The position numbers were made by a program, and so were the translations under genes. A stretch of DNA of 64,000 bases, from positions 372,001-436,000 of the forward strand of contig NIVC01000735.1 in NCBI GenBank assembly GCA_002269645.1. Direction: 5' to 3'. Position 1 is the first letter of the stretch. Each line of letters opens with the position of its first letter. This DNA is from Macrostomum lignano. Lineage: Eukaryota. The notes beneath the pieces are model-generated. The model made no database searches and was not told the DNA's origin. It saw only the letters and a list, made by a program, of their open reading frames with translations. Shown in pieces: positions 8,280-64,000 of this stretch.

Positions 8280-8644
<365 letters not shown>

Positions 8645-33700: not shown

Positions 33701-34091
33701 TTGTTTTAATGTAAAATGATTTTACTATTATTATGATCTGCACAGACATATAGCAAATTTATTAGAAAAGGTTAGTTAATGCATAATGATTAATGTCAAT
33801 GTGTTGCTAGACCTGGGCTAGCCAGCTAGGGTTAGGTTCATCTTAAATTCAAATAGGCAGGAGTTAATAGACATATTATAGTATTACCTGTAACTCAGCC
33901 CGCTCAACATCCCATTGAGATCTTTCCATTTCAAATTTTGTCCATTCTGTTTGTAAAAAGTGTAGAATACCAGCCATAGTATAAACTGGTTCTTTCCCAT
34001 TGTTGCTATCATTCATTGGGTTTCCATCATCTCCAGTTTGCTTATTATAGATTTCCATCGGTAGTGCTGTGAAAGCTGCCGCTTCCTCCAT
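24753..34091 (-). CDS. STRN: Striatin family (STRN/STRN3/Cka-like) WD40 scaffold protein, about 717 aa, 4 exons
   Basis: Exons 34091-33888 (YTMAGILHFLQTEWTKFEMERSQWDVERAELQ), 26927-26355 (ARIAFLQGERKGQENLKHDLVRRIKMLEFALKQERAKFHRLKFG), 26223-25445 (TWAIKFSLRSHFDSVR...ASEDCTLKLWN...TFRGH), 25350-24753 (...AHRKKFDEAIH...ASAGADGLAKVFV-stop). All are family hallmarks and phases are consistent. Confidence 0.93.
27674..28702. mobile_element. Foldback/MITE-like element with short TIRs and mirrored subterminal GAGACAT / ATGTCTY motifs
   Basis: CAGGTAAAAATT at the left, AATTTTTACTTG at the right; repeated GAGACAT motifs on the left and ATGTCTC/ATGTCTT on the right. Confidence 0.5.
30380..31467. mobile_element. 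Foldback element with two diverged inverted arms of about 500 bp; a partial third copy lies near 29530-29845
   Basis: CCATAGTCTGGAAGAGGGGTGGTACGCCGGAT... at 30380 aligns by eye with the reverse complement of ...GCGTACTACCCCTCTTCTGGACTATGG at 31467 over about 500 bp. Confidence 0.8.
31529..32635. mobile_element. Non-autonomous TIR element containing an internal tandem duplication of about 159 bp (about 32179-32497)
   Basis: GACTTCTTCAAGTTTATGTTGATAAAATA at the left versus TATTTTATCAACATAAACTTGAAG..AAGAAGTC at the right; the same motif recurs internally. Confidence 0.6.
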
Positions 34092-36030: not shown

Positions 36031-36974
36031 TTTCTCAACATTCAAGAAAGGGAACTTTGAGCGGACAGGGCATAATTATCAGATATATAGGCGAGGTCAG
36101 GGCTGAGTACAGCAGATGCTACAAGGTACATTCTAAGCCACACAATTGTACTGCTAGTTTAAGACACTAAGTGGACTTCGCCTTCCAAACAGCACTGCAT
36201 ATTTTTAGCCAAGCTGTACTGTACTATACGTACAAGGTACTGTAGGCTACATGCATTGCAAAACACAAATTCTATTATTAGCTCTTGCACACGCAATGCT
36301 GCAGTTGAACTGCGCTAACAGATTGACATAAAAGCAGATCCGCAAATAATAAACAGTGGATTAAAAGTATAATCACAAAAGAATTTTAAACTCTGTCCTG
36401 TTGAGCAAAAGACTCAGTAAGACTTTATAAATGCCAATTTAAATAAGTGCAATTTTATTTATAAAAGCGTTAAAAAGCTGACAAAAAGGGCGCACTACAT
36501 GTACTATTGAGTGCAATTAACAGACTTGAACAGCGATACAAAAGGTTAAACGCAACCAACATTGGCCGAATGTTTAGGGACAAAAAGTGCACTAAGAACT
36601 TATAAAATTGTTTGAGCCAAAAGAAGAATCTGCCTGCTTGCTTAAAGCGTCATCGATTTGATCCTACAGCACACTCTATTAATATTCCCTAAAATATTGA
36701 CACAATTTTATTACTCTATCATGCGACTGCACTGTTGTCAGATTGGGCCAGGTAACATGCTACAGATGCGCTTATTTACGACCGCATAAAACACCCAACT
36801 CACTCAAAACTGACCTGATCATATCTCCTGATCATTGGAGCTGGGCTGACAAAAGTATTCGTAAAATTTAAACTGTAGATGTACGATGCGACAAGCATCA
36901 AAAGTATATTTACCACGGATTGGCGAGCAAGAAGATGATACACTTAGCGATCGATCGAGAGGGACTTCGATATC

Positions 36975-43800: not shown

Positions 43801-45298
43801 CGGCGGCTGCGGCGGCGGTTTCCAGGCCAGCTTGCGCTGCGGGTTGGAGCTGTGCAGCTCGAGCTCCTCGCGGCTGGGCGGCACAATCAGCTGCACGGCC
43901 TTCTTGGACTGGCGCTGCTTCAGCTCCTCCGGGTACGGCTGCCAATCGGAGCCGGACGGCGCAGCGGCAGCGGCGTTGGCCTCGCTGACCGCGGCAGCCA
44001 CCGATGGGTCAATGGTCATCGGCATCATCGTTGGCGGAGGCTGGGACGGTGCCTCGGTCGCGCCGGAGCCAAAGTACGCCTTGAGCTTGTTTAGCGCCTC
44101 ATCAATGGCGGAGCGGCTCTCCGGGTTGAGGCTGCTCAAATTGATCTGCGGCTCAGTTGGCGAGGCTACCGCCGCCGCCGCCTGCTGCTGCTGCACATGC
44201 TGCTCGGTGATGACCTTGTTGAAGTTCTGCGTGTACCAATTGCGGTAGTAGGCGTCGTAGTACTGGCTGTAGTACCGCTGCATCTCCTCCGCACTCGGCA
44301 CGGCACCCGCAGCGGCCGCCGCCGCAGCTGCAGCCGCCGTGGCAGCAGACGCTTGGCCGGCGAGGTCGTTGATGTCGGCAGTCGAGGATGCAGCCGCAGC
44401 CGCTGCGGCGGCAGCTGCGTCAGACATGCTGTCAGCCAGGTTCTGCTGCATCTGGACGGACTCCTGGCTGTAGAGGCTCTCAGATGGCACGAAGGTGCCG
44501 TCCTCAGCGTACTGACTCTGCTGGGCCAGCTGCTCTGCTCGCCAGGTGGCGGCGGCCCCAGCATTGTCCCATTGCGTGTTGTCAATCTTCTCGGGCCCAT
44601 TGCTAGGCGGATACTGAGGCGCCTGCTGCTCCTGCGGCTGCTCCTTGACCATCGGCTGAGCGGGCGCGGAGGGGGCAGTGGCAGCAGCTGACTGCGCAGG
44701 CTGCGGGTTAGGCAGCATGGACACCGGCGGGAATGCAGACACCGGGGTGGCAGTCATGCCGCCGTCCGACCCGAAGACCTGGCTTGGCGGCAGAAGAAGC
44801 GGGCCGCTCTGTACTGTTGCGGTTTGCTGCTGATACAGCTGCTGCTGCTGCTGCCACTGCTCAGGCATAGCAGCGGCTGCACTGGCATAATAGTCATTGG
44901 GCACAGCTGCAGGCACTGGAGCTGCCTGCTGCGGCTGCGGAGGCGGCCAGCCGGTCTCGGGCACAATGTACTTTCCGGCCACCAGAGGACAGCCGGAGAG
45001 GGGATGAGGTTCCCAGCCGATGTCCACATTGAATTCGATTTTGTGTTTGGAGAAGCGCAGCCGAGTCTGGGCTTCGCTGTCGCGCGTGTCGGTTTGCACG
45101 CAGGCGTCCTGCACTGTGCGGGCGCGCTTGCCGCTGCCGTGCCGGTGGTGGCCGGCCTTGTGGCTGCTGCTGCGCTTGCGGTCCTCTGCAGTGACGGGGA
45201 GGCGGGGCGGGAGCTCAGGCTGGCCACGGGGCAATCGGATTGAGCAGGGGGGCGCCCGCCCTACTGCCTGATGCGGCTTGCCGCTTTCCCGTGGGTTT
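40836..45298 (-). CDS. NKRF/CDKN2AIP-like RNA-binding protein (dsRBD-like repeats plus R3H-like C-terminal domain) with long Q/A/P-rich regions; 5' end uncertain
   Basis: Exons about 45298 or 45185 to 43530, 42742-42039, 41771-40836, with phase-consistent junctions. NVFITQGGADWKNGSQEAAARQAFKLL and NPVRFLYNSGRFSNMLISFEFE...GYGYGSTIDKARGFAA resemble NKRF dsRBD-like repeats. LKF...ELGLFYRIVG...RQLLICKK...LLNDGRCGRYWVV resembles the NKRF C-terminal R3H region. Comparisons are from memory. Confidence 0.72.
42950..43147 (-). mobile_element. tRNA-derived SINE in an intron of the NKRF-like gene
   Basis: The minus strand reads GTAGCCTAGTGGTTAGAGCGTCGGACTCACGACT (A box)...GGTTCGATTCC (B box), then a conserved-type SINE body TGTGTCCCTGAGTAAGACACTTAAC...CACCCAGTTGTAAAATG. 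Confidence 0.75.
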
Positions 45299-46783
45299 CT
45301 AACAGTCAGCTTGGGACTCTTATTGATAATAAAAAAGCGCACTTGAGATGTTTAATTTGGATTCGCAGTGTTCACTGCAGCAGCAATAAGGTGGGTACAC
45401 CTGGACAGGTACTCACAGAGAGTGACAGAGCTTCTCAGATATGAAAACATGGAATATACACAAACCAAAGTCTATTGAAAATGTGAACTCCATAATGACA
45501 CCTGGATATTGAGCAGTTTACTACCCACAGGATAAGCAAGCCATCACTGCTTAGTAACCCTTTCGCTTGAGTTGTTTTGTAGCAACTCAAAACCCCCGAG
45601 CACGCACGCGAAGACACGCACTCGCACAGGGTCTACAGTGGCCCTGAATTTCTCATCGGCTGGTGCCGCTGAGGGTTAGACTCTCACGGTCGGGAGTCGA
45701 ACCCCGGGCACTTCTGGCACGACTAATGCAGTTCTTTCCACTGAGGAGAACTCAAATAGAAAGTGATCTCAAAGCAGCTAGTCGCTAAGCTAAGCTGACT
45801 ACTGATAGGCCACAAAATTTAAAGAGAAAAACCAAAAGCCGCAAGTGACAGAGTGGCTCAGCTGATCAAGGACAGCATTTATTTTGCAATTTACTGCCAC
45901 TCAAATATTGAAACTGGCTAGTCATGGCCCAGCTAATCCAGCGCTACTCCTGAAATACTTCACAGACTGTGCCTCGACTTCCATCTGCCTGGCTGCTCGC
46001 CTAAGTCTCTCGAATATTAAAGGCAAATGACGAAACAGAGAAAGAAGAACAAAACTCGAATCCAACTGGTGTTCTCAATTTACTATTTTTATCGAACAAT
46101 TGGCGGGCACAACAGGTAATAAAATGCACAGCGGTGGGTGGCAGCGGCCTCGCTCTGCCTTACCCTTGTGTGAAGACATTAAAGGTCGGCAACCTGGATC
46201 GCTAGAGAGTTCGCGCCGCCTTCCTTTGGCAGAGGCGCGGCAGGTCAAGACGGTGGGATTGGGCGATTCAATGCATGCATAAGTTTTGGCATGGCTTAAT
46301 TACAAATGTGCAATCCGATTCTATCAATAGTATGAGCTTATGAGATCAGCTTAAATCCACGTAGAAGATTATATACCTTAATATATTTTAATTAGCTCTT
46401 AACTTTTGCCGTACACATGCTAAGTAGCTTGCAAAAAATTTACAAGTTATAACTCTACAATAAAAGTACATGGATCATGAATAGTTAAGTCAAATTTTTA
46501 TATGATAGGAATATAATTTAAAAAATTCAATAAAAACATTTTGTTTTTTTGTTGGTAGAATCTAAGAAACAAAAGTCTTTAACCAAAAATGGAGATTGAA
46601 ATATAAAGATTACATTAAACAAAAACATAAGTTATGTACAAATTATAAAAGTATTCATTTTTAACTAATCTTGGCATTTCAACCCTTTGATTATAAGACT
46701 AAGAATCTTAGGATTTTCCTAATCTATATATTAGATATATGAAAAATAAATATATATTTTATTATATAAATATAAATATATAA

Positions 46784-46909
46784 ATTCACCTGGCCATTTC
46801 TATTGGCAACACACACATGTTGCTATTGGCTGAGAGCAGTCACACAACTACTATTCCATCCAATAGCGACTTACATGTGTGTGTTGCCAATAGATATGGC
46901 TAGGTGAAT
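46784..46909. mobile_element. Small MITE/hairpin with about 45-bp inverted arms
   Basis: ATTCACCTGGCCATTTCTATTGGCAACACACACATGT versus ACATGTGTGTGTTGCCAATAGATATGGCTAGGTGAAT. Confidence 0.7.
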
Positions 46910-47341
46910 ACTTAGGTTGCACTTAGGTTCAAATGTTGTTACATTTGAAAATTTATGGCAATCCTAGCAAAAATATTACAAATTTAAGTATTCTTAGTTG
47001 TAACATTTACGATTCTCTAATAAAAGCTATAAGTTTTTTAGTATATGACTATTTTGATAATAGACTATCTTTTGAATAACTAAAAATAACTAAATTTGGT
47101 AACTAAAATTGACAAAAAATTTATTTAAAGAATCAAAATATAAAACATCAACTTTTATAAACCTATTTATTGTTAAAAAACAATTACTAGGCGAACACAA
47201 TTAAACTAAATTGCTTAAAAGAATTTCTTTCATCTTATCTCTATAATCTTTTTACCTTAGAAAACTTTAAAAATTAAAATAATATATTACACTTAAATTT
47301 TAAAGATAGTATATTAAACAAATTTAAATGGTCATCCCATA

Positions 47342-47942
47342 GGTTTCAACCTACTTCAGCAAAAAAATTTTAGGCAAAAGTCAGTAATGGCAAAAGATAC
47401 ATTTGCAATGACCATTTTGGCAAAAAAAATATTCCAAGCTTCGTTGAAAAGTTTTTTGTTTTAGAAGAAAGTTAAAAATAAAAACAACAAACTTTATAAA
47501 GACAAATTTTATTGTGACATGTTTTTGTTTTGTTGCAGTTTAATTTAGTTGTATTAGTTGTATTTGTATTACGGCAGAATTTCAAAATACAATTTTAGGA
47601 GCCTGGATAATCTGAAAAACCACACCATCATCATCCCTAATCTACTGACTGCATATCAATAGACTGCATGTACATAACATAGCTATGAGCTAAGTCATGA
47701 GTTTTTTAATTTTCTAACTGCAAATAATTTGCAGCAATTATTTAATCTGTGATGATCAATGATCAATGATTTAAATTAAAAGCTTCAATCACCAAAGTGG
47801 TATATTTGCAATATATACGTAGCCTATCTTTTCGCCAAACTGGTCACTTTCTTTTGCCGTAATGTACATCTATTGAAACTTAAAATTCACTTTTGCCGAA
47901 GCGTCTTTTGCCGAAAATTCCTTTGCCAAAATGGGTTGCACC
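47342..47942. mobile_element. Mutator-type (MULE) non-autonomous element, copy 1
   Basis: Termini GGTTTCAACC...GGTTGCACC, exact 9-bp TSD CATCCCATA (47333-47341 and 47943-47951), subterminal GGCAAAA/TTTTGCC repeats. Confidence 0.85.
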
Positions 47943-48369
47943 CATCCCATAGATGCTAGAGAGATGGGAAGATAATCAACCCTTGATAGATACAAATTTG
48001 GTCATCTAGGGGCTTATAGCCTACAGTCCAGATCATACCAAGTGCATACCAATGGCCAATACTAAACAAATCTATAGTATAAATGCTAATATACTAAGAC
48101 AAATATTATAATGAAATTTGGACTATGCAAAAGACTAGCAAACATCTGATATAATTTACGAAAATGGAATGGATGATATTGTAAATCTAATAAAAATCAT
48201 AAGTTTTAATATATTATACACTGTGCATGGCAATGCAATTATAAATTAAGTTTTAATTTTAAAATTATTTTAAAATTATTTTATTTTATTTTATTTTAAA
48301 ATAATTTTTTAATTTTTAATACTATATATACTAAGGTTTTAAAATAACACAAGAAAATTCTAGTATCTC

Positions 48370-48495
48370 TTCTATATTATACTATATTATACTTCTATAT
48401 TATACTATATTATACTTCTATATTATACTATATTATACTTCTATATTATACTATATTATACTTCTATATTATACTATATTATACTTCTATATTAT
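48370..48495. repeat. AT-rich tandem repeat (TATATTATACTATATTATACTTC-like)
   Basis: Directly visible. Confidence 0.8.
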
Positions 48496-49636
48496 ATCTT
48501 CTAGAAGATAACAGTCCAATTTAGTAATAGCCACTTTGGTAAGCCACTTTGGTAACAAATGACTTATTTCATAGAGAGGATTTCTATGAGGAATGACTTA
48601 TTTCATTTGTAACAGCCATTTTAATAATAGCCACTTTAGTAACAAATGGACATAATAGTATATATTAAGTGATATACTCCAAAAGAATGTGCAAATGAGG
48701 TTTTGGAAAGAATGACAAAAAAGAATTAGGATATATTCTTGCACACTTCTAGAGATAAAGTGATATAGAAAACTAGGCCTATGTAATGCATATATGCATA
48801 TGTTTAACTTGTTCAAAAGATTTTTAACTGCAATATATTTTAATTTCTGGGAGCATCAGATATATAATTAATGACTTTAAAATAATAAGATTTACTTTAA
48901 GTTTTCATTTTTATAATTTTTTTTGCTTTAGTTTCTTTGCTTTCAAATTTTTAGAAAGCAAATGCAAGTTTAAAATAATTATAGTATAGTTTAACTTAAA
49001 AATGCAATTGTATTTGGCAATAATTTTTATATATTAAACTACTAAGTACTAAAGTTAATAGTAGTATTATTATTTTAGTATAATGGATCTTATTATCAAT
49101 TATAATATTGTGCTACATTGCACTTTTTTATATTTGTCTATAAATTGATTATAACTTCTATAATAGGCCTATAACAAACAATTTAGCTGCTAGGCCCCTA
49201 TAGTTCAAGTGACATATACACTGAGATTTCCCAGTATAGGCCTACAAGGGTATTTGCCATTTTCAATGTATATCAGCATATATCCCAATGTGTATAACAT
49301 AGTAAAAATATTCAGCTTAGATCTATGGTATATTTATATATGTTAGGATCAAATAAAGTGACTAAAGTTATATTATAGAAGGGCTTATGCTATTCTCAGA
49401 AATTTTTCGCAAAATTAAATTCTCGCCAAAATAACAACTATTGTATTATTTGTTTTAATGCACAATTTTGTTTTACCAAATAATCTTTGTTTTAATGATG
49501 CACATAATTTGTTTTAGTTTACTGATTTTTTTAATGCACAATATGTGAGCCAATAGAATAAGACATTGTTGGATAGAATTAAGAGTATTTTGTCAAAGCA
49601 GAAATTTTCAGTCAAGCATTGTGCCCAATAAAAAGG

Positions 49637-49770
49637 TGGAATACCCAGTAAAAGGGTGGAATACCCAGTAAAAGGGTGGAATACCCAGTATAGAGGGTGA
49701 AATACCCAGTATAGAGGGTGGAATACCCAGTATAGAGGGTGGAATACCCAGTGTAAAGGTTGGATTACCC
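49637..49770. repeat. About 21-bp tandem repeat (GGTGGAATACCCAGTATAGAG), about 6 copies
   Basis: Directly visible. Confidence 0.85.
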
Positions 49771-50218
49771 AGGAAAGGAGAATTTTCAGGCTGCTCCAGA
49801 TTAGCGTGATGCAGTTCTAAGTTGTGAGAGACAGTACTTAAGAAGCCAGAAACCCCTTTGTCTGTGGTAAATGTGGTGTCTAGACTGGATAATTGTAGGA
49901 ATTTAGCAGTAGTCAGCAGTGTCTTGCCGCTCGGGCACTGAAGCTACCAAGGGTAATTCGTAGCAACAATAGCCCATAATGTAAAAGTACATGTAAGTAT
50001 AGAAATAGGATTCTTAGAAATAGCAAACTTAGCAGATTTAGTACAGTTCAGTGATTAAACTTTAGAATTAAATAGAGAGAGCTTTTTTGTCTTTTCTCAA
50101 TGCACATTGCAAAAGTGCATAATTTTAGTTTGCTAGGCCTACTTTTCTCTATATGAATAACAAATTCAAGAATGAAAAAAGTGTACAACTTTGGCATACA
50201 AAGTTTAAAACATTTTGT

Positions 50219-50705
50219 GGCAATCTTCTAGTTTTGCACATTTAATTATTTTAAAGCATTTTTTATTATTTTCAGCAAAGCAATCATGGCTGGGTGCCCT
50301 GCAGCACCAACAACTATTGTTCCAGTCCCAGACCTATAACTTGCTGCTGATCTATGCAACCTGAACCCCTTGATGCATGAGTTTAATTAAATTACAGCTA
50401 CAAATGATGCACTGATCCACTGGCTAGCCAGGTACCACCTGCTACTAGCCAATAAACATTGCTGTGCCAATTGTCCTGGGCAGCCATCCATGCAGCTGCA
50501 GATATAGGAAGGCAACTGCTTTATCAACTGCTGCTGCTAGGCTTGCCCACAATGCCGGACACAGGCCTCAATCTAAGGGAACATCCTTTTCTGGGTGGCA
50601 CACTATTATGCCGTCTGATCTGAGGCATAAAACATAAAACAAAACTGTCGTTAACTGTCATTTTAAAAACAGTTAGAATTAAATGTGCAAAACTAGAAGA
50701 TTGCC
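50219..50705 (+). mobile_element. Internally deleted Merlin/IS1595-like DNA transposon
   Basis: Perfect 29-bp TIRs GGCAATCTTCTAGTTTTGCACATTTAATT (50219-50247 and 50677-50705). Near-TSD CATTTTGT versus CATTTTTTGT. Internal stop-interrupted peptide LIHWLARYHLLLANKHCCANCPGQPSMQL resembles a Merlin-type N-terminal Zn-ribbon. Confidence 0.65.
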
Positions 50706-52587
50706 CATTTTTTGTCCTAGCATACAAATGTGGTCTTGCATTTTTCCCTTACTGGACCTGGCGACTGGCATACATTAGTACATTATTTGAACTATGCCTA
50801 GTAGACCCTAGTCTTAGTATATAATAAAATATTCATTTATTCATTTTTTGGGGCTCTAAAATTAGAAATCAATACAATTCAAGCAAAAAAATTTAACAAA
50901 CAATTCTATATGACAGTAGGCTTATGCCTATATAGACTACTTTGTCTATTACTAGAATAGAATGACAGAACTGTTATTACCAACTGTTCAGCTAATACCA
51001 TATTTAAATGCCAATAAAATTGGGCATAGTTCTAGTTTACTTTGTTATATTCCAACCCCCCTACCCTTGAATAGAGGGCGAAATAATTTAATGCAGTAAA
51101 CTAGAACTATGCCAAAAATTGTCATCATTCTCTAGATTCTAGGACCCACTCTTGTTGCTGTTGCAGGCCTACAACACATACATGGGTACTAACTCGCGGC
51201 AAATCGTCTTTATAAACTTCTATTTCGAAAACTTTTCCAAATACATAGCTCTATAATATATTGGCCAAACAGGCTAATTGCCTGAGCCAAATTCTCTTAC
51301 TACTCTCTTACTACTTACAGAAGTGTTATGTAACAACAATATTTTAACGTTAGAGTTGAAACGCAAGCTAGCTAACCGATCGAATAGTTTTGTCAAACTC
51401 TGAAAGCCATTCTCTTTAGGCCCTACTCCAATCAGATTGTAAAAGAAATATCATAGGGTTGAAACGCTTAAAACTTATGAAAGTAAAAGTAAATATGAAA
51501 TAGTCAAATAGTAGTCATAGAAAAGACTACTAGACTAGATTAGAATGCTAGTCATTAATTAGCATTGCCACAACCCCCATTTATTTCTAAATAATTTTGC
51601 GTTTCACAATTATCTTTTAACCAAATATAATAATTAGAGCTCTACTACATGAATAGTAGTTCTGATGTAGTTCTGATAAAGCTCGCAATAAATTTAAAAA
51701 AATGCAAATAAAATTTTGTTTTACTGTTTCGGTGTTTCTAAACAAAGTTTATGACTTAAAAACATGTACATGCCTAGAAAAACAGTTTCCGTTATATTCA
51801 AAATACCAAAACAAAATAAAATTTTATTTACTTATCAGACACTTCTAAAATAATCTATGATGAAACTTCTTGCAAACATAATTTTAAAAAGTGACGTGCA
51901 AGCATGAACACATCACCAGTATGATATAATTTAGTCGTTTTATTCACTTAGTCATAGTGTTTTGTACTCTTTACTTTGCATTTTCTATATACTATAAATA
52001 TCTCAATCGAAAGCAAATGATTACCCAAAACTCTGTGTTCATTGCGCTACTTTCGTTACTTACTTCCCTTTCATTAAATCTCCCATTTTGTGAATTCTTG
52101 TGAATTATTCATAATCATAACCTGTTTTTGATTTCCTATTTAAATTAATGACAGCTGGTAGCTTCTGGTGCTATTAGCCTTGAACTTGGCTATCTTTTGT
52201 ATGCTGACTGTGTACACTTCATGTTGAACCTGAAAATTTTATATGCCAAGTGTTATGCCAAGATTGTTAGTGAAAGCAAAAATACACTGGAAAGTTCTGG
52301 CATAAAAGCCACTTTCCAGTCCATGGCTTCCAGCTCCAGCAAAAATTGTCATATTCGATATTGTCATATGTGGGTAACAAGAAAAACAACTAAATTATCT
52401 AAATTGTCATCGTCTCTGCATTTAGACAATGCTGGATTCACTAAATTGTCATATTATATTTATGTTTCATTGTTTGTGCAAGGATCTTGGCTCTCATAGT
52501 GGCAACATGTTCTTGTTTGATAAATGATTTTCAACTTTAAATTATATTTATACCATCTGCTTAAAAGATGCAAAGCCTTGGACTAAT

Positions 52588-53158
52588 GGTTTCAACCTAC
52601 TTCGGCGAAATAATTTTCGGCAAAAGTCAATAATGGCAAAAAATACTTTCATAATGAGCATTTTGTTTAAAGCTGACCATTTTGGTGAAAAAATTTATTC
52701 TAAGCTTTGCTGAGAAGTTTTTTGTTTTAGAAGTAAGTTAAAAAAATGATAAACTTTAAAGAGACTAATTTCATCTAAACATGTTTTTGTTTTGTCGCAG
52801 TTTAATTTAGTTGTTTTATTAGATGCCCTTCCATTATGGCGGAATTTCAAAGTACAATTTTAGGAGCCTGGGATTTAATCTGAAAAACCACACCATCATC
52901 ATCCCTAATCTATCAATTGCATATTGATAGATTGCATGTACATAACATAACTACAAGCTAAGTCATGAGTTTTTTAATTTTCTAACTGCAAATAATGAAC
53001 AATTTATTAAAAGCTTCAATCACCAAAGTGGTATATTTGCAATATATACGTAGCCCATCTTTTTGCCGAACTGGTCACTTTCTTTTACCTAAATGTACAT
53101 CTATTGAAACTTAAAATTCACTTTTGCTGAAGCGTCTTTTGCCGAAATGGGCTACACC
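52588..53158. mobile_element. Mutator-type (MULE) non-autonomous element, copy 2
   Basis: Homologous along its length to 47342-47942; a different exact 9-bp TSD, TGGACTAAT (52579-52587 and 53159-53167). Confidence 0.85.
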
Positions 53159-54813
53159 TGGACTAATTCCCATATTAAAGTTAATAGTCTAGCTGAACTT
53201 AAGGTTTAACCATAGAATACTGAGCTAATATTAACAGAGTATTCTTTGGGTTTAAATAGGAATTAATAATAGAAAGATTATGTTTTAATAGTTTGATAGC
53301 TTTATAATTAGAAGCAGATTTATTTTTAAGCTTTATTTAAAATATTATTTCTTAGCTGTTGTAAAAATTTGCTTTTAATTTATTCTAGTGTCCTATGTTA
53401 TTTTGTTTAACTTTGTTTTAATTCTAAGAAATTTGATAAATTTGTCATATTTAAATGATAAAGTCTTAGGGATTGGCTAAGTTGTCATCATCATATGACA
53501 ATTTAGAATATAACAATTTTGATCATACCCTTGCTTCCTCTTTGCACTTTGTCTCATAAAAGGGTGCGCAGCATAAAAGGGATACAAGTATAAGACAAGA
53601 AGCAGTTAGACTATGTATAGAAGATAAAGACTAAAGGCCTAGTACCTAACAATATATTAATCAAGATATAAGTAAATAGCTTTTAAAATCCAGAAATACT
53701 ATATTCATATAAATATAAACATGTATAAATAGTAGTATCTATTTAACTACATGAATAACAAATTGGCTTTTTGTCCAGTATAATAAACTAGACAAATAGT
53801 GAAATATCTATTTATCTAAGAACCAGAAAAATAACCATATTGCTTTGTCTGGTAACTAGACAAATAACAATTGCCAAACTTAATATATATTTTATGCAAA
53901 AGATTAGTTAAAATGAAAAAAAGGTTTACTTTTTTAGATTTTTGTTATATTTACTTTGCATTTAAAGATTTTGAAATTAAATTGGAATTAAATTCTTTTG
54001 CTTTTATAACTAATTAAAACTATAAATGAGATCCTTGTCATTGATTTTGTGTTTATCTAACTTTCTTAGCATGCGTGCTTTGTATTATAGCCTTGTATAT
54101 AGCAAATTTTATTTTTTTCAAATAGATTATTCAAAATAAAAATAGCATGCCAGTTTTAAAAATAAATAATACTTTTTAAGGTAAAGAAAAAGTGTTGTAA
54201 AGCTTCATTAAATTATTATTAAAATCATGGAAACCTTAAGCATAAAGTCATTATAAAAATAAAAGCAACACAATAAAAAATTTTTTTAATTCTTCACTAT
54301 GTATTTGCATCATTAGTAATTAGTTATATCTGATATTTTGTTGCCCCTAGTCAAGAAACAAATTTAATATGATTTTTGTCTATTATGAAAAATGTCAATT
54401 TGTTCATTCATGGTTTTATTGTACGCCTTAATTTTTTTATTGTAACATTGTATGTTTGCATGGCATTAATAGATAGCAATTTATTTATTTTCAGTTGCAA
54501 TTTGACTTGTTCAAAATCAATAATGGAAATATGTAAGTCAAATGACACTTTATTTTCAAGATACTAATAATTAAAAAAATGTATTTGATCTCAATATTGA
54601 CTATGGTCTTCACAGATATTTAATGTTTATTATTTTTCCCCACTTGCCAATGCATTTTAGTGCAGCAAGCTGTTACAAATTACTGCAAACTTGACAAAAA
54701 GTTGGACTCCTGTACAACTATGTAAGTACTAACATGGTCAGGCTGTCACCTGTGCTATTGTCTTGTCTATGCAGGCCACTTCCATAGGACTCACCAATTC
54801 TTGCACTTTGCAG

Positions 54814-57800
54814 CTCTGAGCTGTATGATCGAATTGGCGGCACTGAGCTGGGCGCCTCCCTGCTGTGCACCGCCAATCCCGAGCAGCAGCTGCAGGTCAC
54901 TCACTGGGTTCGCTACTCCCTGCTCCACCTGCGCCAGCGGCCTGACCTGCTGGCCTCTGCGCTGGCCCACGCCACCTACCTGGTGGGCGGCAGCCTCAGC
55001 CTGGCCGACCTGGCTGTCTGGGCGCAGCTCAGCTGCTGTCCGCGCTGGCAGGCCGCCAGGAAAGCCGGCGCCGCTCAGGCTGAGATCGAGCGGCACTTCC
55101 GGCTGATTGGCGCCGAGGTTGGCGACGCTGTTGGCGCGCTGAAAGCCCCAGCGACTGCGGCACCGGGCGATAGCGGCGCCGCTGGCATGAAGTTCGAGGA
55201 GGGCGGCAAATTCCGCGACCTCTCTGGTGCCGTGCACGGCGAGGTGGTGGTTCGATTCCCGCCCGAGGCCAGCGGCTACCTGCACGTCGGCCATGCCAAA
55301 GCCGCGCTGTTGAATCAGCATTACAGGAACAGCTGCGGCGGCCGTCTCATCATGCGATTTGATGACACTAATCCGGCCAAGGAGACTGCCGAGTTTGAGC
55401 AGGTTAGAATGCCAGTTTCGCGTGTCCCAGTGTCTCTAACGTACCATTTGGCAGCTGCATGCTGAAGTACTCAGGGTAGGTAGATGCACTTCTAAAGTAC
55501 TTAAGGCAGGTACATTTGGATGCACTTCTTAAGTACTCGGGCCCCGTTTCTGTGCTGTAATTGGTCCATACCCCAATGGTGCTATTTCTAAAATCCACGG
55601 TACCAATGTGTAATTTGGAGTATTGGAGTCTCTAGTTTTTCAGTGCGACGCGACTGCTTCCCTCAGGTAATCCTAGAGGACGTGGCCGCCCTGGGCATCA
55701 CCTACGATCATTTCTCGCACACGTCCGACCACTTCGACCGGATGATGCAGCTGTGCGAGCGAATGCTGCGCGAAGGCAAGGCTTTTGTTGACGACACGGA
55801 CCCAGAGGCCATGAAGGCCGAGCGGGAGAAGCGGGTGGAATCCCGCAATAGAAACAATTGTGAGTGTAAAGCTTTACCTTAGCTATAATACTACTGGCTT
55901 CAGTAGTCAGTTTGGTTTATTTCACTGAACTCCGACTCCATCTCCCCTGGTCAGCCGTGGAGCAGAACATGCGCCTGTGGGAGGAGATGAAGGCCGGCAC
56001 TCCGCTGGGCTGTCGGTGCTGCGTGCGCGCCAAAATTGACATGCAATCGGACAATGGCTGCATGCGCGATCCCACCATCTACAGGTGCAAAAATGAGCCG
56101 CATCTGCGCACCGGTACTAAGTACAAGTGAGTGCTGTTGGAGTAGCAATAAGTAAATCTGCTGAATTTATGACAATCCAGCATCAGTAACTGACTTTTCT
56201 AACCGTCATTGAAGAGTCTACCCGACCTACGACTTTGCCTGCCCGATTGTGGACTCGCTGGAGGGCGTCACGCACGCCCTGCGCACCCTGGAGTACAAGG
56301 ACCGCGATGCCCAGTACAATTGGTTCATTGACGCGCTGGGTGAGCTGACACAGCTGACCTACTTGATCACTACTTGCACCAAATGTGAAACATTAGTCAC
56401 TGAGATTTCTTGTCGGTCTTTCTGTTTTTGAAGGTCTTCGCCGGCCCCTGCTAGAGGAGTTCAGCCGACTGGCCCTGCAGAACACGGTGCTGAGCAAGCG
56501 CAAGCTCACCTGGTTCGTGAACGAAGGCCTGGTGGACGGCTGGGACGATCCCCGATTCCCCACCGTGCGGGGCATCCTCCGGCGTGGCATGACGCTCGAG
56601 GGCCTGCGGCAGTTCATCCTGGCCCAGGGATTCGCCAAATCCAACGCCACCATGGAGTGGGACAAGATCTGGGCGTTCAACAAGAAGGTGATCGACCCGG
56701 TGGCGCCCAGGTACACGGCGCTGTTCAAGAAAGAGGCTGTGCCGGTCCGAGTGACCAACTTTGACCGCGCCGAGCCCTACAGCTCCAAGGCGAGTCCTAG
56801 GTTTATTATTGTTTTAGCATGACGAAGTTTTGTTCTTTAGAATGCTTTTTTAGTTTTTTACGCAGCGTCCGTGCAAATTAATAATCAGCCGCTCCACCTT
56901 GCAGGTTGCGCTGCACCCAAAGAACGCGGACGTCGGCACTAAAACGATGTGGCACTGGCGCGAATTGCTCATTGAAGGCGCCGACGCACAGACTCTGCAC
57001 GAAGGCGAGCTGGTCACCTTCATCAACTGGGGCAACCTCTGCGTTACCCGCCTGGTCCGCGCGCCAGACGGCCGAGTCACAGAGGTTGAGGCTGAGCTTC
57101 GGTTGGACAACACAGACTACAAGAAGACGCTGAAGGTCACGTGGCTGGCAAACCTGCCCGCCAACCTGGTGCCCGCCGTGTGCGTCCACTACGATCACAT
57201 CATCAGCAAGCCGCTGGTGGGCAAGGACGAGGACTTCCGGCAGTTTGTGAACCGGAACTCCAAGAGACAGGAGCTGATGCTGGGTGATGAAGGACTGGCC
57301 AACCTCCGCAAAGGCGACATCATCCAGCTTCAGCGGCGCGGCTTCTTCATCTGCGATGAACCAGCAGGCGAGAGCGCGTACTCGGGCTGCGCCATGCCCT
57401 GCTACCTCATTGCCGTGCCCGACGGCCACCAGAAGGAGATGCCCACTTCCGGGTCCAAGCACAAGGAGGCTCCGGCCGGCCAGGAGGCCAAGGCAAGCAC
57501 CGGCGGCCGCGTCTCCTCGAAGGGCGCGGCAGGCAAGGCGGCCTCAAAGAAGGCCTCGTCACCGCCGGCCGTGACAGCAACGGTTAATGGCGGCGGTCCA
57601 GGACCAGACGCTAGAAGCCTTGACCTGCTGCGGCAGATTGAGGCGCAGGGCAACCTAGTGCGCGAGATGAAGGCCGCGAAAGCTGACAACGTGAGGATAA
57701 TTAGAATGATTCATAAATTCTCCATTGTAAACTAGCCATGCGTTTTGGCCTTGCAGATTCACGCGTGTCGCTATCAGCATCTCTCTAACCTTCTCTTTTT

Positions 57801-60800
57801 GATTAAATACAGAATGCTGTACAAGTCGAGTTGAAAAAACTGCTGCAGCTCAAGGCGGACTTCAAGTCTCACAGCGGCCAGGACTGGAAGCCCGACCTGC
57901 TGCAGAAAGCCTCAGCTGCCGACCCAGCAACCGCAGCGGCGCCGCCTCCTCAGGGCTCGGGGCTGCAGCAGTTCAAGCCGCTGCTGGAGAAAATCGCAGC
58001 ACAAGGCGATCTGGTCAGGGATCTGAAGGCGAAGAAGGCGGACCAGGTGAGCTGCGTGAGCCTGTTTGAGTAGGGAATTGAGCTGACCAGAGTGATGAAC
58101 TCACAGTTGCACTGAGACAGCGCAGTGATGCAAGTCATCTGTGTGCACTCTAATTTTTTTCTGATGCTGGTCGCTCCATCACTTGCAGCAGGCATTCAAT
58201 TTGTCAATTTAGTTGGGTAACTGGGTGTGTTGCTATGGGATACTCTGTAACTGGGTGTGTTGCTGTGGTAGACTCGGTAACTGGGTGTGTTGCTGTGGCA
58301 GACTCGGTAACTGGGTGTGTTGCTGTGGGATACTCGGTAACTGGGTGTGTTGCTGTGGTAGACTCGGTAACTGGGTGTGTTGCTGTGGGGGATACTCGGT
58401 AACTGGGTGTGTTGCTGTGGGATACTCGGTAACTGGGTGTGTTGCTGTGGCATACTCGGTAACTGGGTGTGTTGCTGTGGCAGACTCGGTAACTGGGTGT
58501 GTTGCTGTGGGATACTCGGTAACTGGGTGTGTTGCTGTGGGATACTCGGTAACTGAGTGTGTTGCTGTGGGATACTCGGTAACTGGGTGTGTTGCTGTGG
58601 GATACTCGGTAACTGGGTGTGTTGCTGTGGTAGACTCGGTAACTGGGTGTGTTGCTGTGGGATACTCGGTAACTGGGTGTGTTGCTGTGGTAGACTCGGT
58701 AACTGGGTGTGTTGCTGTGGGGGATACTCGGTAACTCGGTGTGTTGCTGTGGGATACTCGGTAACTGGGTGTCTTGCTGTGGTAGACTCGGTAACTGGGT
58801 GTGTTGCTGTGGGATACTCGGTAACTGGGTGTGTTGCTGTGGTAGACTCGCTAACTGGGTGTGTTGCTGTGGGATACTCGGTAACTGGGTGTGTTGCTGT
58901 GGTAGACTCGGTAACTGGGTGTGTTGCTGTGGGATACTCGGTAACTGGGTGTGTTGCTGTGGTAGACTCGGTAACTGGGTGTGTTGCTGTGGGGGATACT
59001 CGGTAACTGGGTGTGTTGCTGTGGGATACTCGGTAACTGGGTGTGTTGCTGTGGGGGATACTCGGTAACTGGGTGTGTTGCTGTGGTAGACTCGGTAACT
59101 GGGTGTGTTGCTGTGGGATACTCGGTAACTGGGTGTGTTGCTGTGGTAGACTCGGTAACTGGGTGTGTTGCTGTGGGATACTCGGTAACTGGGTGTGTTG
59201 CTGTGGGATACTCGGTAACTGGGTGTGTTACTGTGGGGGATACTCGGTAACTGGGTGTGTTGCTGTGGTAGACTCGGTAACTGGGTGTGTTGCTGTGGTA
59301 GACTCGGTAACTGGGTGTGTTGCTGTGGGATACTCGGTAACTGGGTGTGTTGCTGTGGGGGATACTCGGTAACTGGGTGTGTTGCTGTGGGATACTCGGT
59401 AACTGGGTGTGTTGCTGTGGGATACTCGGTAACTGGGTGTGTTGCTGTGGTAGACTCGGTATCTAGGTGTGGTGCTTCAATGGCTTAAAGTATAACTTGC
59501 TCAATTCCGAATGCAATGATGACTCAAAGTCGCACTGATTACACATCTGTAATGATGTCAATCTACCTTTAATTTTACTGAAGCATTCGGACTCGTCGGT
59601 TCGAATTCAGAAAAGTGAACACTGTCGCATTTTTCTTAGAGACGGTCGGCTGTGCGCACACTGGCTGCATTTCAAGCGACATGCCATATTTTCACAATCG
59701 GCGAGATTCATTACTGCCCATTCTGCCGACTTCTGTGCAGGCACACACTCACATAGGGGTGCACAGCGGCCCTAAATTTGTTTATCGATTGGCATGTTTA
59801 CTTCACTGTGCTTTGGGGGTTGGCCATCAAGTGCGTTAATCGCACGAGCAGACCTAAGCCGAGATTGCAATTTAGAGCTTAGAATCGAGTCTGAGCCGCT
59901 GGCACATCAAAGCGCCGCGCTAGGCCCATCAGTGCAGCCGCTCCCCCAACCTCACTGTGAACCTTCAGGCCGCAATCAAGTCGGCAGTGGACCAGCTGCT
60001 GCAGCTCAAGGCGGACTTCAAGTCTCACAGCGGTCAGGACTGGAAGCCCGAACTGCTGCAGAAGGCCACCCCTGCCGCCCCAGCTGCCGCCCCAGCAACC
60101 GCAGCGGCGCCGCCTCCTCAGGGCTCGGGGCTGCAGCAGTTCAAGCCGCTGCTGGAGAAAATCGCAGCACAAGGCGATTTGGTCAGGGACCTGAAGGCAA
60201 AGAAGGCGGACCAGGTGAGCTGCGTGAGCCTGTTTGAGTAGGGAATTGAGCTGACCAGAGTGATGAACTCACAGTTGCACTGAGACAGCGCAGTGATGCA
60301 AGTCATCTGTGTGCACTCTAATTTTTTTCTGATGCTGGTCGCTCTTCTGTTTCTATCGTGCTTTGCTATACTTCAGTTCTGAAGTCGAGTTCTGTAGGTC
60401 TTTAATTTAGGTTTCTAGCCGATTATCCGGTTCAGCCGAGTGCAGCAGCTACTTCCACGCCGTTTTGCACTGAAGCATTTGAGAATTCAGAGCCACATGC
60501 TCTGACAATGCGCTCGTATAGAGAGCTCAATTAGTTTGAATGGCGCGTGAGCATCAGAGCCACATGCTCTGACAATGCGCTCGTATAGAGAGCTCAATTA
60601 GTTTGAATGGCGCGTGAGCATCAGAGCCACATGCTCTGACAATGCGCTCGTATAGAGAGCTCAATTAGTTTGAATGGCGCGTGAGCATCAGAGCCACATG
60701 CTCTGACAATGCGCTCGTATAGAGAGCTCAATTAGTTTGAATGGCGCGTGAGCATCAGAGCCACATGCTCTGACAATGCGCTCGTATAGAGAGCTCAATT

Positions 60801-62280
60801 AGTTTGAATGGCGCGTGAGCATCAGAGCCACATGCTCTGACAATGCGCTCGTATAGAGAGCTCAATTAGTTTGAATGGCGCGTGAGCATCAGAGCCACAT
60901 GCTCTGACAATGCGCTCGTATAGAGAGCTCAATTAGTTTGAATGGCGCGTGAGCATCAGAGCCACATGCTCTGACAATGCGCTCGTATAGAGAGCTCAAT
61001 TAGTTTGAATGGCGCGTGAGCATCAGAGCCACATGCTCTGACAATGCGCTCGTATAGAGAGCTCAATTAGTTTGAATGGCGCGTGAGCATCAGAGCCACA
61101 TGCTCTGACAATGCGCTCGTATAGAGAGCTCAATTAGTTTGAATGGCGCGTGAGCATCAGAGCCACATGCTCTGACAATGCGCTCGTATAGAGAGCTCAA
61201 TTAGTTTGAATGGCGCGTGAGCATCGTGGACCTCGAAGTCGTTTGGTGCCATCAAATTTATCTGGGGCATGCATTTCTGCTCCTATTGCTGAAGCTGTTC
61301 CACCAGATGCTGATATCCAGAGTTGTAAAGCTGCAAGGGGAACATGAGCTCAGGATTACCAGAGTATCGCTGAATTCCCGGCGATCCGCAGCCGTCGCCA
61401 TAGTTATATCCGTCACAACCTTTGTAATTGCCGCATTAAAAGCTCATTCCCAGTTTGTAGCTCCACGGCTGTTGCATTTCGTCGTCTGACCCAGGTGTTT
61501 GGTGTGGGCAATGCACAATTCGAAGAAAGATCATTCACATTCATTGTCTGCACGCTGATTTACCGTAGTCTATGGTGAAATATATGTTAAGCCATCAATT
61601 TTTTGTGCACTCTAATTTTTTTCTGATGCTGGTCGCTCCATCACTTGCAGCAAGCATTCAATTCGTCAATTTAACTGGGTGTGTTGCTATGGCATACTCG
61701 GTAACTGGGTGTGTTGCTATGGCAGACTCGGTAACTGGGTGTGTTGCTATGGGATACTATGGGATATGGGATATCACTTGCTCAATTCCGAATGCAATGA
61801 TGACTCAAAGTCGCACTGATTACACTTTGTAATGACGTCAATCTACCAATGAACACTCTAATTTTTTGCTGATGCATTCGGATTGGGTTGAAAAGTGATT
61901 GGTTAAAAGTGGGACTTGACAATTCCATTCCAGCTGGTCATTGATCCATCCATCTCCGCTATCCTCAGGCGGCGGTGAAGCCTGCTGTTGATCAGTTGCT
62001 GGCGCTGAAGGCGGAGTTCAAGGCCCAGTCCGGCATGGACCACAAGCCGGACCTCATCAAGCAGCTGGACCAGCAACTGCAGGCAGCAGGCGCTTCCGTC
62101 GGCCTGGACCAGCTGCGGCAGATCAAGGCGGCCGGAGACCGGGTGCGCGCAATGAAGGAGTCCGGCGCTGGCAAGGCGGAACTGCAGCCGGCCCTGGACC
62201 AGCTGATGCAGGCGAAGGCGCAGTTCAAGCAGGCCACGGGCAAAGAGTACAAGCCGGAGATGCTGAAGACTCTGACTTGA
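54814..62280 (+). CDS. EPRS: Cytosolic glutamyl-tRNA synthetase (GST-like N-domain, class I catalytic domain, anticodon-binding domain, 4 WHEP repeats); the GluRS half of EPRS; 5'-most exon(s) not secured
   Basis: Exons 54814-55402, 55667-55859, 55955-56126, 56215-56339, 56434-56789 (GC donor), 56905-57690, 57813-58046, 59969-60214, 61969-62280 (TGA). Motifs [70 protein letters not shown]. An upstream in-frame candidate exon lies at 54661-54721. Confidence 0.93.
58215..59460. repeat. 29-31-bp minisatellite (AACTGGGTGTGTTGCTGTGGGATACTCGGT)n in a GluRS intron; short related copy at about 61672-61750
   Basis: Directly visible. Confidence 0.96.
60488..61224. repeat. 11 apparently identical 67-bp tandem units in a GluRS intron
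   Basis: Unit CAGAGCCACATGCTCTGACAATGCGCTCGTATAGAGAGCTCAATTAGTTTGAATGGCGCGTGAGCAT, with no spacers. Confidence 0.95.
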
Positions 62281-62809
62281 ATCAACGGGTTTATGAAATC
62301 GCCGCATGCTCAGCATCTCATTAATTCTATTCTTTAGTAAATTACGAGTGCTCTGCAAGCCGATGGCAACATTGAAGCTTTGTGATCTATCTTTCGCTGG
62401 TCTGTCTGATGTTGGTGTGACTGCCGTGTATGAGTGAGGTTATGGTATATCCAAAATTTACAATTAGTAAAGCAAGTTCAATAAGCACCAATGCTATGTT
62501 GTCAGTAGTGTCAGTTTTTCATGATTTTGCTTTTTCCCATGCGTTTTTTCTTTTCCCCTATTATTTGCCCTTTGACCTTTCTGTCCTGCTCGCATTCTTC
62601 CGCCCGAGTCGAGGGTTTCATTTGATCCTGCGCATCAACAGCGAAGCAAATCAAATACAGACTGAGAGAGATTCAATGTAACTGCTTTACCTGCCTGACC
62701 TGTTTGACTGGATTCACTTGTATGCGACTTTTTCTTTTGGAGCTTTAAAGTTTATTCTAAACTTTGGGAATTTCCTTCCAATTACTGACTCTGTGCTACT
62801 GTCCGCCTC

Positions 62810-63385
62810 ACCTTCTCTCATCTATCTCTCTTCTCTCCTCTGACTCCCCTTCTCCCATCACTGACTCTCCCCTTCTCTCATCACTGACTCTCCCCTTCTC
62901 TCATCACTGCCTCTCCCTTCTCTCATCACTGACCATCCCCTTCTCTCATCACTGACTCCCCTTCTCTCATCACTGACTCTTCTCTTCTCTCATCACTGAC
63001 TCTCCCCTTTTCTCATCACTGACTCTCCCCTTCTCTCATCACTGCCTCTCCCCTTCTCTCATCACTGACTCCCCTTCTCTCATCACTGACTCTTCTCTTC
63101 TCTCATCACTGACTCTCCCTTTCTCTCATTACTGACTCCCCTTCTCTCATCACTGACCCTCCCCTTCTCTCATCACTGCCTCTCCCCTTCTCTCATCACT
63201 GACTCTCCCCTTCTCTCATCACTGACTCCCCTTCTCTCATCACTGCCTCTCCCCTTCTCTCATCACTGACTCTCCCCTTCTCTCATCACTGACTCTCCCC
63301 TTCTCTCATCACTGACTCTCCCCTTCTCTCATCACTGACCCTCCCCTTCTCTCATCACTGACTCTCCCTTCTCTCATCACCGACT
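62810..63385. repeat. About 20-22-bp pyrimidine-rich minisatellite (CCCCTTCTCTCATCACTGACT) between the GluRS stop and the ProRS start
   Basis: Directly visible. Confidence 0.93.
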
Positions 63386-63536
63386 CTCCTCATTGCCATT
63401 CTTCATTCCATCTCTTAAAAGCCCAGCTAACTTTTCTAAATAGTTTTGATTTTGCTCACTAGAGGCATCCGAGTGCAAGTCTCTGACACTACTAACAGTA
63501 GTACCCGAATCGCCCCATGCCGGTGGCAGACGCGGA

Positions 63537-63842
63537 ATGGCTGACGCGGACGCGATTAAGAGTGAAATCGACCAGCTGGGAGACAAGATTCGCGGCTTGA
63601 AGGCTGGCGGAGCCGACAAGTCTGTGGTGGACATTGAGGTGGCCGCACTAAAGGAGCTGAAGCAGCGCTACAAAGACCTCACTGGGGTTGAACTGGCCGG
63701 CGGCCGGCCAAACAAGAAGACCAAGGAGACTGCAAAGCCCCCGCCAGTCCAGGACGACCAGGACGATGCGGGCCGGAAGCACCAGACTCGGCTGGGCATG
63801 GAGGCTAGCAAGGCGGACAACCTGGCCGACTGGTACTCGCAG
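63537..63842 (+). CDS. EPRS: First coding exon of a WHEP plus prolyl-tRNA synthetase (ProRS half of EPRS); continues beyond the window
   Basis: MADADAIKSEIDQLGDKIRGLKAGGADK...ALKELKQRYKDLTG is a WHEP domain. [21 protein letters not shown] matches the start of EPRS-type ProRS ([21 protein letters not shown]). Phase-0 donor CAG|GTGAGT at 63843. Confidence 0.9.
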
Positions 63843-63874
63843 GTGAGTTCACTGTTGTGACTCACTGACAGCTG

Positions 63875-64000
63875 CCCCTGAGAATCGCCCATCGAATCGC
63901 CCCTGAGAATCGCCCATCAAACCGCCCCTGAGAGTCGCCCACATCAAACCGCCCCTGAGAGTCGCCCCCATCAAACCGCACTAAAGAATGGCCCCATCAA
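63875..64000. repeat. Start of an intronic minisatellite (GCCCCTGAGAATCGCCCATCAAACC family)
   Basis: Directly visible and truncated by the window end. Confidence 0.7.

Follow-up and report, generated by a model that had tools for sequence, protein, structure and literature searches.

We examined a 64,000 nucleotide (nt) stretch of the genome of the flatworm Macrostomum lignano (assembly GCA_002269645.1, contig NIVC01000735.1, positions 372,001 to 436,000 of the forward strand; here called the window and numbered from its first base), in which the gene for glutamyl-prolyl-tRNA synthetase (EPRS) has probably undergone fission in place, giving two neighbouring genes of the same orientation, with two separate proteins as the main products. 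The upstream gene encodes a glutamyl-tRNA synthetase followed by four WHEP domains, GluRS-(WHEP)4, and the downstream gene a single WHEP domain followed by a prolyl-tRNA synthetase, WHEP-ProRS. EPRS is, to our knowledge, the only fused aminoacyl-tRNA synthetase. The fission is supported by the open reading frames (ORFs) and their domains, by where these frames stop and start, by a second copy of the locus, by the lack of a consensus splice donor before the stop, and by an RNA-based annotation that has two coding sequences (CDSs). A second, independent reversal of the EPRS fusion is thereby supported, one that is already present without comment in the GenBank models and is contradicted by a UniProt model.

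The exons of the GluRS gene were delimited by homology and splice signals, and two 5' mini-exons were then added using the 1038 amino acid (aa) protein of a paralogue. The resulting spliced model matches GenBank PAA77577.1, on NIVC01000735.1, exactly over all 1036 aa, and in Pfam its product consists of tRNA-synt_1c, two anticodon-binding domains and four C-terminal WHEP-TRS stretches (PF00458; 224.8 bits across the four against a gathering cut-off of 32.5). The ProRS gene extends past the end of the window, to approximately 66954 in window numbering, and its product, rebuilt from four exons, is likewise an exact match to PAA77578.1 (590 aa), with WHEP (residues 13–61 of 590, 51.6 bits against the cut-off of 32.5), tRNA-synt_2b, HGTP_anticodon and ProRS-C_1. 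The class I GluRS and class II ProRS modules are thus both present, in the order GluRS then ProRS, with no single ORF linking the two cores: a TGA intervenes, there is no consensus donor, and there are two CDSs. The two proteins have consecutive accession numbers with no gene called between them, and GenBank holds separate GluRS and ProRS CDSs at both copies of the locus. The annotation was derived from RNA-seq, using StringTie/TACO transcripts cut at mapped spliced-leader (SL) and poly(A)-end reads; TransDecoder was used to call the ORFs (PMC5730564).

The TGA that ends the GluRS frame (62278–62280) lies seven codons past the YKP motif of WHEP4, and the WHEP motif G.EYKPE is in frame right up to the stop and 3' of every weak donor in the last exon. 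GC content at third codon positions (GC3) is 0.77 in the final 13 GluRS codons and falls to 0.45 directly 3' of the stop; it is again 0.45 in the 29 open codons upstream of an ATG at 63537 and 0.77 downstream of it. The in-frame YKPE together with this GC3 pattern indicates that translation runs to the TGA and restarts at or near 63537. Readthrough of the stop codon was considered and rejected, as a TAG follows 18 codons downstream in sequence that resembles non-coding DNA. The ATG at 63537 (G at -3, G at +4) opens MADADAIKSEIDQLGDKIRGLK..., seven residues before the Pfam WHEP match, and is likely to be the ProRS start codon; an out-of-frame ATG lies ahead of it at 63517. The deposited ProRS mRNA model begins at 63520–63522, 15–17 nt before ATG 63537, and the first ProRS exon continues through the WHEP domain and the ProRS motif ...ADWYSQ to a strong donor, CAG/GTGAGT, at 63843.

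The cis-splicing donor consensus of M. lignano is GT[G/A]AG (PMC8629364). Eight of the nine donors of the GluRS gene, with the first ProRS donor counted in, are of the type G[TC][GT]AG, one of them being the GC donor at 56790. The inventory of donors in the last GluRS exon (61969–62280) contained neither a GT[GA]AG nor a G[TC][GT]AG site, and the candidates there score -10 to 5.5, where the real donors of the gene score 2.3 to 8.4. In addition to the GT at 62247 and the GC at 62171 (Table 1), they comprise GC 62240 and GC 62033, both phase 1, and GT 62143 and GT 61975, both phase 0; measured against the gene's own standard and the species consensus, all are poor. GC 62171 is in frame with the AG acceptors ending at 63462, 63498 and 63501, though its use would leave half a WHEP domain. 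These three AGs upstream of ATG 63537 are phase 1, those ending at 63464, 63473 and 63479 are phase 0 and the one ending at 63529 is phase 2, such that in-frame donor and acceptor pairs are available in every phase between the last GluRS exon and the ProRS exon. A perfect TACTAAC is found at 63490–63496; the AG ending at 63529 is 33 nt downstream of it, while AGs 63498 and 63501 are much closer to its branch A, at 3 and 6 nt.

An initial annotation made from the letters of the window had proposed fission into adjacent genes with the ancestral order kept, and the exact agreement of both models with GenBank and the two CDSs at both loci support that proposal. Its description of a last GluRS exon running from 61969 into TGA 62278–62280 with no canonical donor is correct, there being no GT[GA]AG before the stop, as is its placing of ATG 63537 at the start of a WHEP domain followed by ProRS about 1.26 kb on (1257 nt from stop to ATG). 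It was also right that AGs 63462, 63498 and 63501 are phase 1 whereas the donors at 58046 and 60214 are phase 0. Its inference that skipping the terminal exon would shift the frame holds for those three AGs but not overall, as the phase 0 AGs 63464, 63473 and 63479 and the phase 2 AG 63529 had been overlooked. The splice-site inventory was incomplete in other respects: GC 62240 is not the only phase 1 donor, GC 62171 being a better match and GC 62033 also present, and the in-frame GT-AG pair 62247/63529 had been missed.

A search of representative proteins with the junction peptide returned a 1038-aa M. lignano GluRS-(WHEP)4 whose C-terminal part aligns with the last GluRS exon, with just one more residue after the aligned stretch. 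On its contig, NIVC01003103.1, a distinct gene with the same orientation is annotated 1.7 kb downstream of this GluRS-(WHEP)4; it encodes 590 aa, with WHEP, tRNA-synt_2b, HGTP_anticodon and ProRS-C_1. The identity between the two copies of the locus is 99.5–100 % in the 5' two thirds of GluRS, dropping to 95–97 % around the junction. Their last GluRS exons differ by 10 substitutions and one in-frame 6-nt indel, including two amino acid differences in the last four codons (KTLT here, KALA in the paralogue), and their first ProRS exons by 12 substitutions. Despite this 3–4 % divergence, the TGA is at the same position, the ATG is retained, and the YKPE of WHEP4 is found in both. The retention of stop and start in a diverged second copy rules out an assembly error, and the pattern is the one that would be expected if both ORF ends are functional. 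The spacer is 1257 nt here and 1750 nt in the second copy, the difference being mostly minisatellite copy number. No further EPRS-like M. lignano proteins turned up in protein homology searches.

The divergence between the copies is very uneven along the locus, at 0–0.5 % over the first 3.5 kb of GluRS, in exons and introns alike, and 3–5 % near the GluRS/ProRS junction. This unevenness suggests recent gene conversion over the 5' part of GluRS (54496–62280 against 10001–18105 of the paralogue).

A number of observations weigh against fission. Both deposited ORFs are flagged as partial, and the boundary between them could have been introduced by the pipeline into what is one longer transcript; support from RNA-seq, SL and poly(A) reads is second-hand, through the deposited annotation. 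The deposited ProRS 5' end at 63520–63522 has no AG in front of it, and the bases that precede it, CATG, are also the last four bases of the SL (which ends ...CAATTTATTGCATG); the boundary could be a genuine transcription start past ATG 63517 or, equally, an artefact of trimming SL reads. The canonical poly(A) signals AATAAA and ATTAAA are absent from the spacer, and the spacer, with its internal minisatellite, resembles the two preceding introns. The AG at 63529 has a good branch-point context in the TACTAAC. Finally, the UniRef/UniProt entry A0A1I8GLS9, a 1507-aa M. lignano 'glutamyl-tRNA synthetase', fuses both halves.

A0A1I8GLS9 belongs to the same 90 % cluster as GluRS. It joins GT 62247 to AG 63529 in frame (...ATGKE-RGMADAD...; fused junction peptide ...ATGKERGMADADAIK) and, outside its missing blocks, is identical to the two GenBank proteins. 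It lacks 13 residues at the GC-AG intron 56790–56904, a GT inside the exon being used instead, and 84 residues of the ProRS class II core (VQRYVDD...RDLPLK), all of which lie within a single exon. It is probably a homology-guided prediction restricted to GT-AG introns, and its junction a prediction error. Because two further blocks are missing, including part of the ProRS core, we give it little weight; a minor fused EPRS isoform alongside the split products is possible, given that the entry shows a fused reading to be mechanically feasible. A homology search of word-indexed proteins with the junction peptide gave no M. lignano match, because the 90 % cluster of ProRS is represented by a 484-aa model that does not include the first exon, and as the proteins listed were never above 965 aa the listing could include no full-length animal EPRS. 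Scanning metagenomes with this peptide gave no match, and neither did exact look-ups of the ProRS first-exon ORF and of the neighbouring ankyrin ORF.

These points can be accommodated in other ways. The locus could be one gene with a composite terminal exon, from which polyadenylation gives GluRS-(WHEP)4 while splicing from a weak donor (GT 62247, GC 62171 or GC 62240) to an AG within 63462–63529 gives some fused EPRS. Competition between splicing and polyadenylation is familiar from immunoglobulin mu, and a truncated product of this sort from human EPRS N1; here the in-frame pairs in all three phases, the GC donor already used by the GluRS gene, the branch-point context of AG 63529 and the 62247/63529 junction of A0A1I8GLS9 would all fit. 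However, such a junction is in neither of the RNA-based GenBank models at either locus, the GTACAA at 62247 is far from GT[GA]AG, and the weak donors cut within WHEP4, ahead of the conserved YKP. If this were the only arrangement, the essential ProRS would depend on a poor splice site and the occurrence of an ATG in good context exactly at the start of a WHEP domain would be a coincidence. We consider a composite exon unlikely, but it is the main rival to fission.

An ordinary fused EPRS, whose main mRNA is spliced from 62247 to 63529 and whose two-gene annotation is an artefact of the pipeline cut, is much less likely again. The deposited GluRS CDS runs past 62247 to the stop at both loci, through sequence that is coding-like and has YKPE in both copies, and the donor is non-consensus; the fused UniProt model that would speak for this explanation is faulty elsewhere, in the 13 aa at the GC intron and the 84 aa of the class II core. 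The genomic CATG ahead of the ProRS 5' end, being identical to the end of the SL, might have produced a false SL signal and caused such a cut. It is most improbable that the stop results from faulty assembly or sequencing or that, in a polyploid genome, this locus is a pseudogene undergoing decay. M. lignano line DV1 does have duplicated chromosomes and many near-identical copies (PMC8629364), but the same TGA and ATG occur in an independently assembled copy with 3–4 % divergence, the indel between the copies is in frame, both halves are intact and full-length with all of their Pfam domains, and the searches revealed no other EPRS-like M. lignano protein.

Under the fission reading, the upstream gene would yield GluRS with four WHEPs, translation ending at TGA 62278–62280, and the gene about 1.26 kb downstream would yield one WHEP and a complete ProRS (class II core, anticodon-binding domain and C-terminal zinc domain). 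The GluRS mRNA would be polyadenylated within a few hundred nt of the stop, for which the candidate signals are two AGTAAA hexamers (62336 and 62466) that are conserved between the locus copies. The ProRS model begins 1239 nt past the GluRS stop. Between shared flanks, the minisatellite block is 545 nt long here and, in the paralogous locus, 1042 nt (18655–19696 of that extract); most of the length difference between the spacers arises from it. The 159 nt that precede the ProRS ATG differ between the locus copies at a single base (99.4 % identity), compared with 96–97 % identity in the flanking coding exons. This is suggestive of a functional element within them, but the weight of the comparison is limited because the copies diverge by anything between 0 and 5 %, depending on the position in the locus.

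The 5' end of the ProRS mRNA might arise from its own promoter in these 159 nt or, about equally likely, from SL trans-splicing of a GluRS-ProRS precursor at an AG among 63462–63529. Candidate SL acceptors are ACTAACAG/ (63498) and GGTGGCAG/ (63529), and two candidate AGs within 63462–63529 are CAG, matching [T/C]TNCAG at five of six positions. An operon in M. lignano has been defined as genes in the same orientation, with the downstream gene SL trans-spliced and a repeat-adjusted distance of <1 kb (PMC8629364). The repeat-adjusted distance between GluRS and ProRS is at most 689 nt (1239 less the 550 nt of the minisatellite, with the GluRS 3' untranslated region still included), hence under 1 kb, and the pair would qualify as an operon only if ProRS is trans-spliced. 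It resembles the SL-resolved operons of this species (PMC8629364) in the adjacency, shared orientation and spacing of the genes and in an upstream 5' end at an SL acceptor, and differs from them in lacking an AG in front of the deposited ProRS 5' end. We put at somewhat less than even the chance that one precursor is transcribed from the old EPRS promoter and separated at the RNA level, by poly(A) cleavage past the stop and SL trans-splicing before ATG 63537. If so, the old linker intron would have become the intercistronic spacer (outron), and the occurrence of both known EPRS fissions in phyla with SL trans-splicing would be explained, as this machinery would allow a fused gene to be separated without acquiring a new promoter.

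In the searchable literature, the EPRS fusion is regarded as fixed throughout the animals and Caenorhabditis as its only reversal (PMC4072531), and no mention of an EPRS split in Macrostomum was found there. In Ray & Fox 2014 (PMC4072531), unlinked GluRS and ProRS were reported for C. elegans only, with six C-terminal WHEPs on GluRS and one N-terminal WHEP on ProRS, which agrees with the citing of this nematode by the initial annotation as the known fission with WHEPs on both halves; Brugia, Ascaris and Loa have a linked EPRS, and that of Schistosoma mansoni is linked and does not include WHEP domains. The M. lignano genes resemble those of C. elegans in that the break is inside the WHEP linker, leaving GluRS with several C-terminal WHEPs and ProRS with a single N-terminal one (four and one, in separate ORFs), and in that both phyla use SL trans-splicing and operons (PMC8629364 for M. 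lignano). They differ in that GluRS has four WHEPs, not six. The halves also remain neighbours with a shared orientation and the ancestral order, separated by 1.26 kb (by 1.75 kb in the second copy), whereas the two genes of C. elegans are on different chromosomes.

A trematode locus that appeared to be split proved to be fused. The 758-aa 'GluRS' of Heterobilharzia americana is part of a single ORF that runs from the GluRS core via a K/E-rich linker into the ProRS core, and the annotation break is inside a ProRS exon, 72 nt ahead of the '398-aa ProRS' (OX104108.1, extract 32250–32520). The split in the annotation is an artefact that mimics fission. Hence, trematodes keep the fusion and, judged from these sequences, the split is specific to the Macrostomum lineage and independent of the nematode one, as had been proposed. 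Compared with the canonical animal EPRS (human EPRS1, or the trematode EPRS without WHEP), M. lignano has the same catalytic modules in the same order, with WHEP repeats between the cores and a mid-WHEP phase 0 intron position that is also seen in rotifer gene models, but the linker is broken by a stop and a 1.26-kb non-coding spacer into two CDSs. Human EPRS N1 is a truncated GluRS plus WHEP isoform, generated by polyadenylation inside the coding region and minor beside the fused enzyme. The M. lignano GluRS also comes from an EPRS locus and ends in or after the WHEP linker; in contrast to EPRS N1, its stop is fixed in the genome, and there is a separate start codon and mRNA model for ProRS.

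Two further apparent splits were rejected. A metagenomic protein beginning with M, WHEP and the start of ProRS corresponds to an internal exon of a normally fused gene whose introns are small, and rotifer 'GluRS' models of 686–696 aa are truncated models that read into the mid-WHEP intron. Stand-alone GluRS-WHEP models are also present in many rhabditid nematodes (Ancylostoma, Dictyocaulus, Pristionchus and Diploscapter) among the matches listed, none of which was >965 aa. If they are real, the nematode fission would extend beyond the genus Caenorhabditis.

At the 5' end of the GluRS gene, the two tiny AT-rich exons (54496–54532 and 54661–54721) encode MEILQQAVTNYCKLDKKLDSCTTI. Because the deposited 5' end at 54495 directly abuts an acceptor that fits [T/C]TNCAG (context TTTTCAG), the GluRS mRNA is probably SL trans-spliced at 54495. 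The AUG of the SL itself would be out of frame for GluRS at this position, and the ATG at 54523 is the likely start; the product begins MEILQQAVTNY, and A0A1I8GLS9 has the same start. The N-terminal approximately 70 residues of the GST-like domain present in the EPRS of other animals were not found anywhere in the window, and a candidate N-terminal exon at 45866–46027 was rejected for its low GC3 and lack of an ATG. Over the core, GluRS shares 65–69 % identity with vertebrate and mollusc sequences among the matches listed.

WHEP1, WHEP2 and WHEP3 are each interrupted by a phase 0 intron after KADN or KADQ, and the identical donors at 58046 and 60214 read GACCAG/GTGAGCTGCG. The two exons that these donors end are near-identical tandem duplicates, and the intron after 60214 opens with 130 nt that have an exact copy in the second locus, at the start of the intron after the counterpart of the first WHEP exon. 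A 30-nt minisatellite is present twice in the WHEP introns (58216–59476 and 61672–61758). The duplicated half-exons and intron start and the recurring minisatellite suggest that the number of WHEPs at this locus changes by unequal crossing-over. The intron between the WHEP exons also includes, at 60487–61225, an unusually homogeneous 67-nt tandem repeat (11 copies, 100 % identity).

The deposited genes upstream of GluRS occupy 24753–45351 on the minus strand. For the 3' side we used an extract of the same contig (L004), which is identical base for base to window 44496–64000 and continues past its end. Rfam and tRNA scans of the window gave no matches. Two tRNA-like sequences, at 43060–43150 (minus strand) and 45630–45715, have T-arm motifs GGTTCGATTCC / GGTTCGACTCCC, and one of them sits in an intron of the DSRM_CARF gene; as ARAGORN calls no tRNA there, they are probably fragments of tRNA-derived short interspersed elements. 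Two blocks of approximately 29–34 % GC (28000–34000 and 46000–54700, the second directly 5' of GluRS) lie amid sequence of 45–60 % GC and may be remnants of transposons or AT-rich intergenic DNA, and minisatellites with periods of 12–67 nt are very frequent throughout the window (e.g. approximately 5500–7450, 8200–8660 and 9200–11100).

Table 1. Features of the split EPRS locus and of the rest of the window (window numbering unless stated; / marks a splice junction)
Feature	Position	Strand	Remarks
GluRS-(WHEP)4 CDS	54496–62280	+	PAA77577.1, BOX15_Mlig003944g2; 5'-partial ORF, 1036 aa
GluRS exons 1–6	54496–54532, 54661–54721, 54814–55402, 55667–55859, 55955–56126, 56215–56339	+	
GluRS exons 7–11	56434–56789, 56905–57690, 57813–58046, 59969–60214, 61969–62280	+	
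TTTCAG acceptor	54489–54494	+	Directly 5' of deposited GluRS end 54495
Probable GluRS start codon, ATAATGG	54523–54525	+	First in-frame ATG of deposited ORF; A at -3, G at +4
GC-AG intron, AAG/GCGAGT ... TTGCAG/G	56790–56904	+	Required to reproduce PAA77577.1 exactly
Exon, WHEP1 second half, linker, WHEP2 first half	57813–58046	+	Tandem duplicate of 59969–60214
Exon, WHEP2 second half, linker, WHEP3 first half	59969–60214	+	Near-identical to 57813–58046
Terminal GluRS exon, WHEP3 second half, linker, whole unsplit WHEP4, TGA	61969–62280	+	Begins after CCTCAG; GC3 0.85
Candidate GC donor, CTG/GCAAGG	62171–62176	+	Mid-WHEP4; phase 1, score 5.5; in no gene model
Weak GT donor, AGA/GTACAA	62247–62252	+	Phase 2, score -5.2; non-consensus at +4/+5
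AGTAAA, candidate variant poly(A) signal	62336–62341	+	56 nt past stop; putative function
AGTAAA, second candidate variant poly(A) signal	62466–62471	+	
CT-rich minisatellite	62840–63389	+	23-nt unit, ~24 copies; ~44 % of spacer
159 nt 5' of ProRS ATG	63378–63536	+	Includes TACTAAC, AGs 63462/63464/63498/63501/63529 and ATG 63517
WHEP-ProRS first coding exon	63522–63842	+	PAA77578.1, BOX15_Mlig003030g3, 590 aa; 5'-partial ORF starting GGRRG-M
Striatin	24756–26951 and upstream	-	717 aa, nine-kb gene; 100 % identity over 647 residues to BOX15_Mlig033268g2
Ankyrin-repeat ORF	35191–36045	-	Single exon, 284 aa; deposited annotation
DSRM_CARF-domain protein	40836 to beyond 45000	-	1134 aa; deposited annotation
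Tubulin gene, 3' of ProRS, past window end	25016–26620 of extract L004	-	Deposited annotation

The public models of these genes are contradictory, with two genes in GenBank and a 1507-aa fusion in UniProt for M. lignano and a schistosome fusion that is annotated as split, and they would mislead surveys of EPRS architecture. If the split in Macrostomum is a second independent reversal, the fusion would have been dispensable more than once. It would also provide a natural before and after pair within one phylum, the trematodes being fused and Macrostomum split, with the halves still side by side and WHEPs on both sides of the break. M. lignano is tractable to transgenesis, and re-fusing the halves or separating them further would be feasible, as would addressing questions of co-transcription and stoichiometry. 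The locus may be of interest both for the evolution of synthetases and for gene fission in organisms that use trans-splicing.

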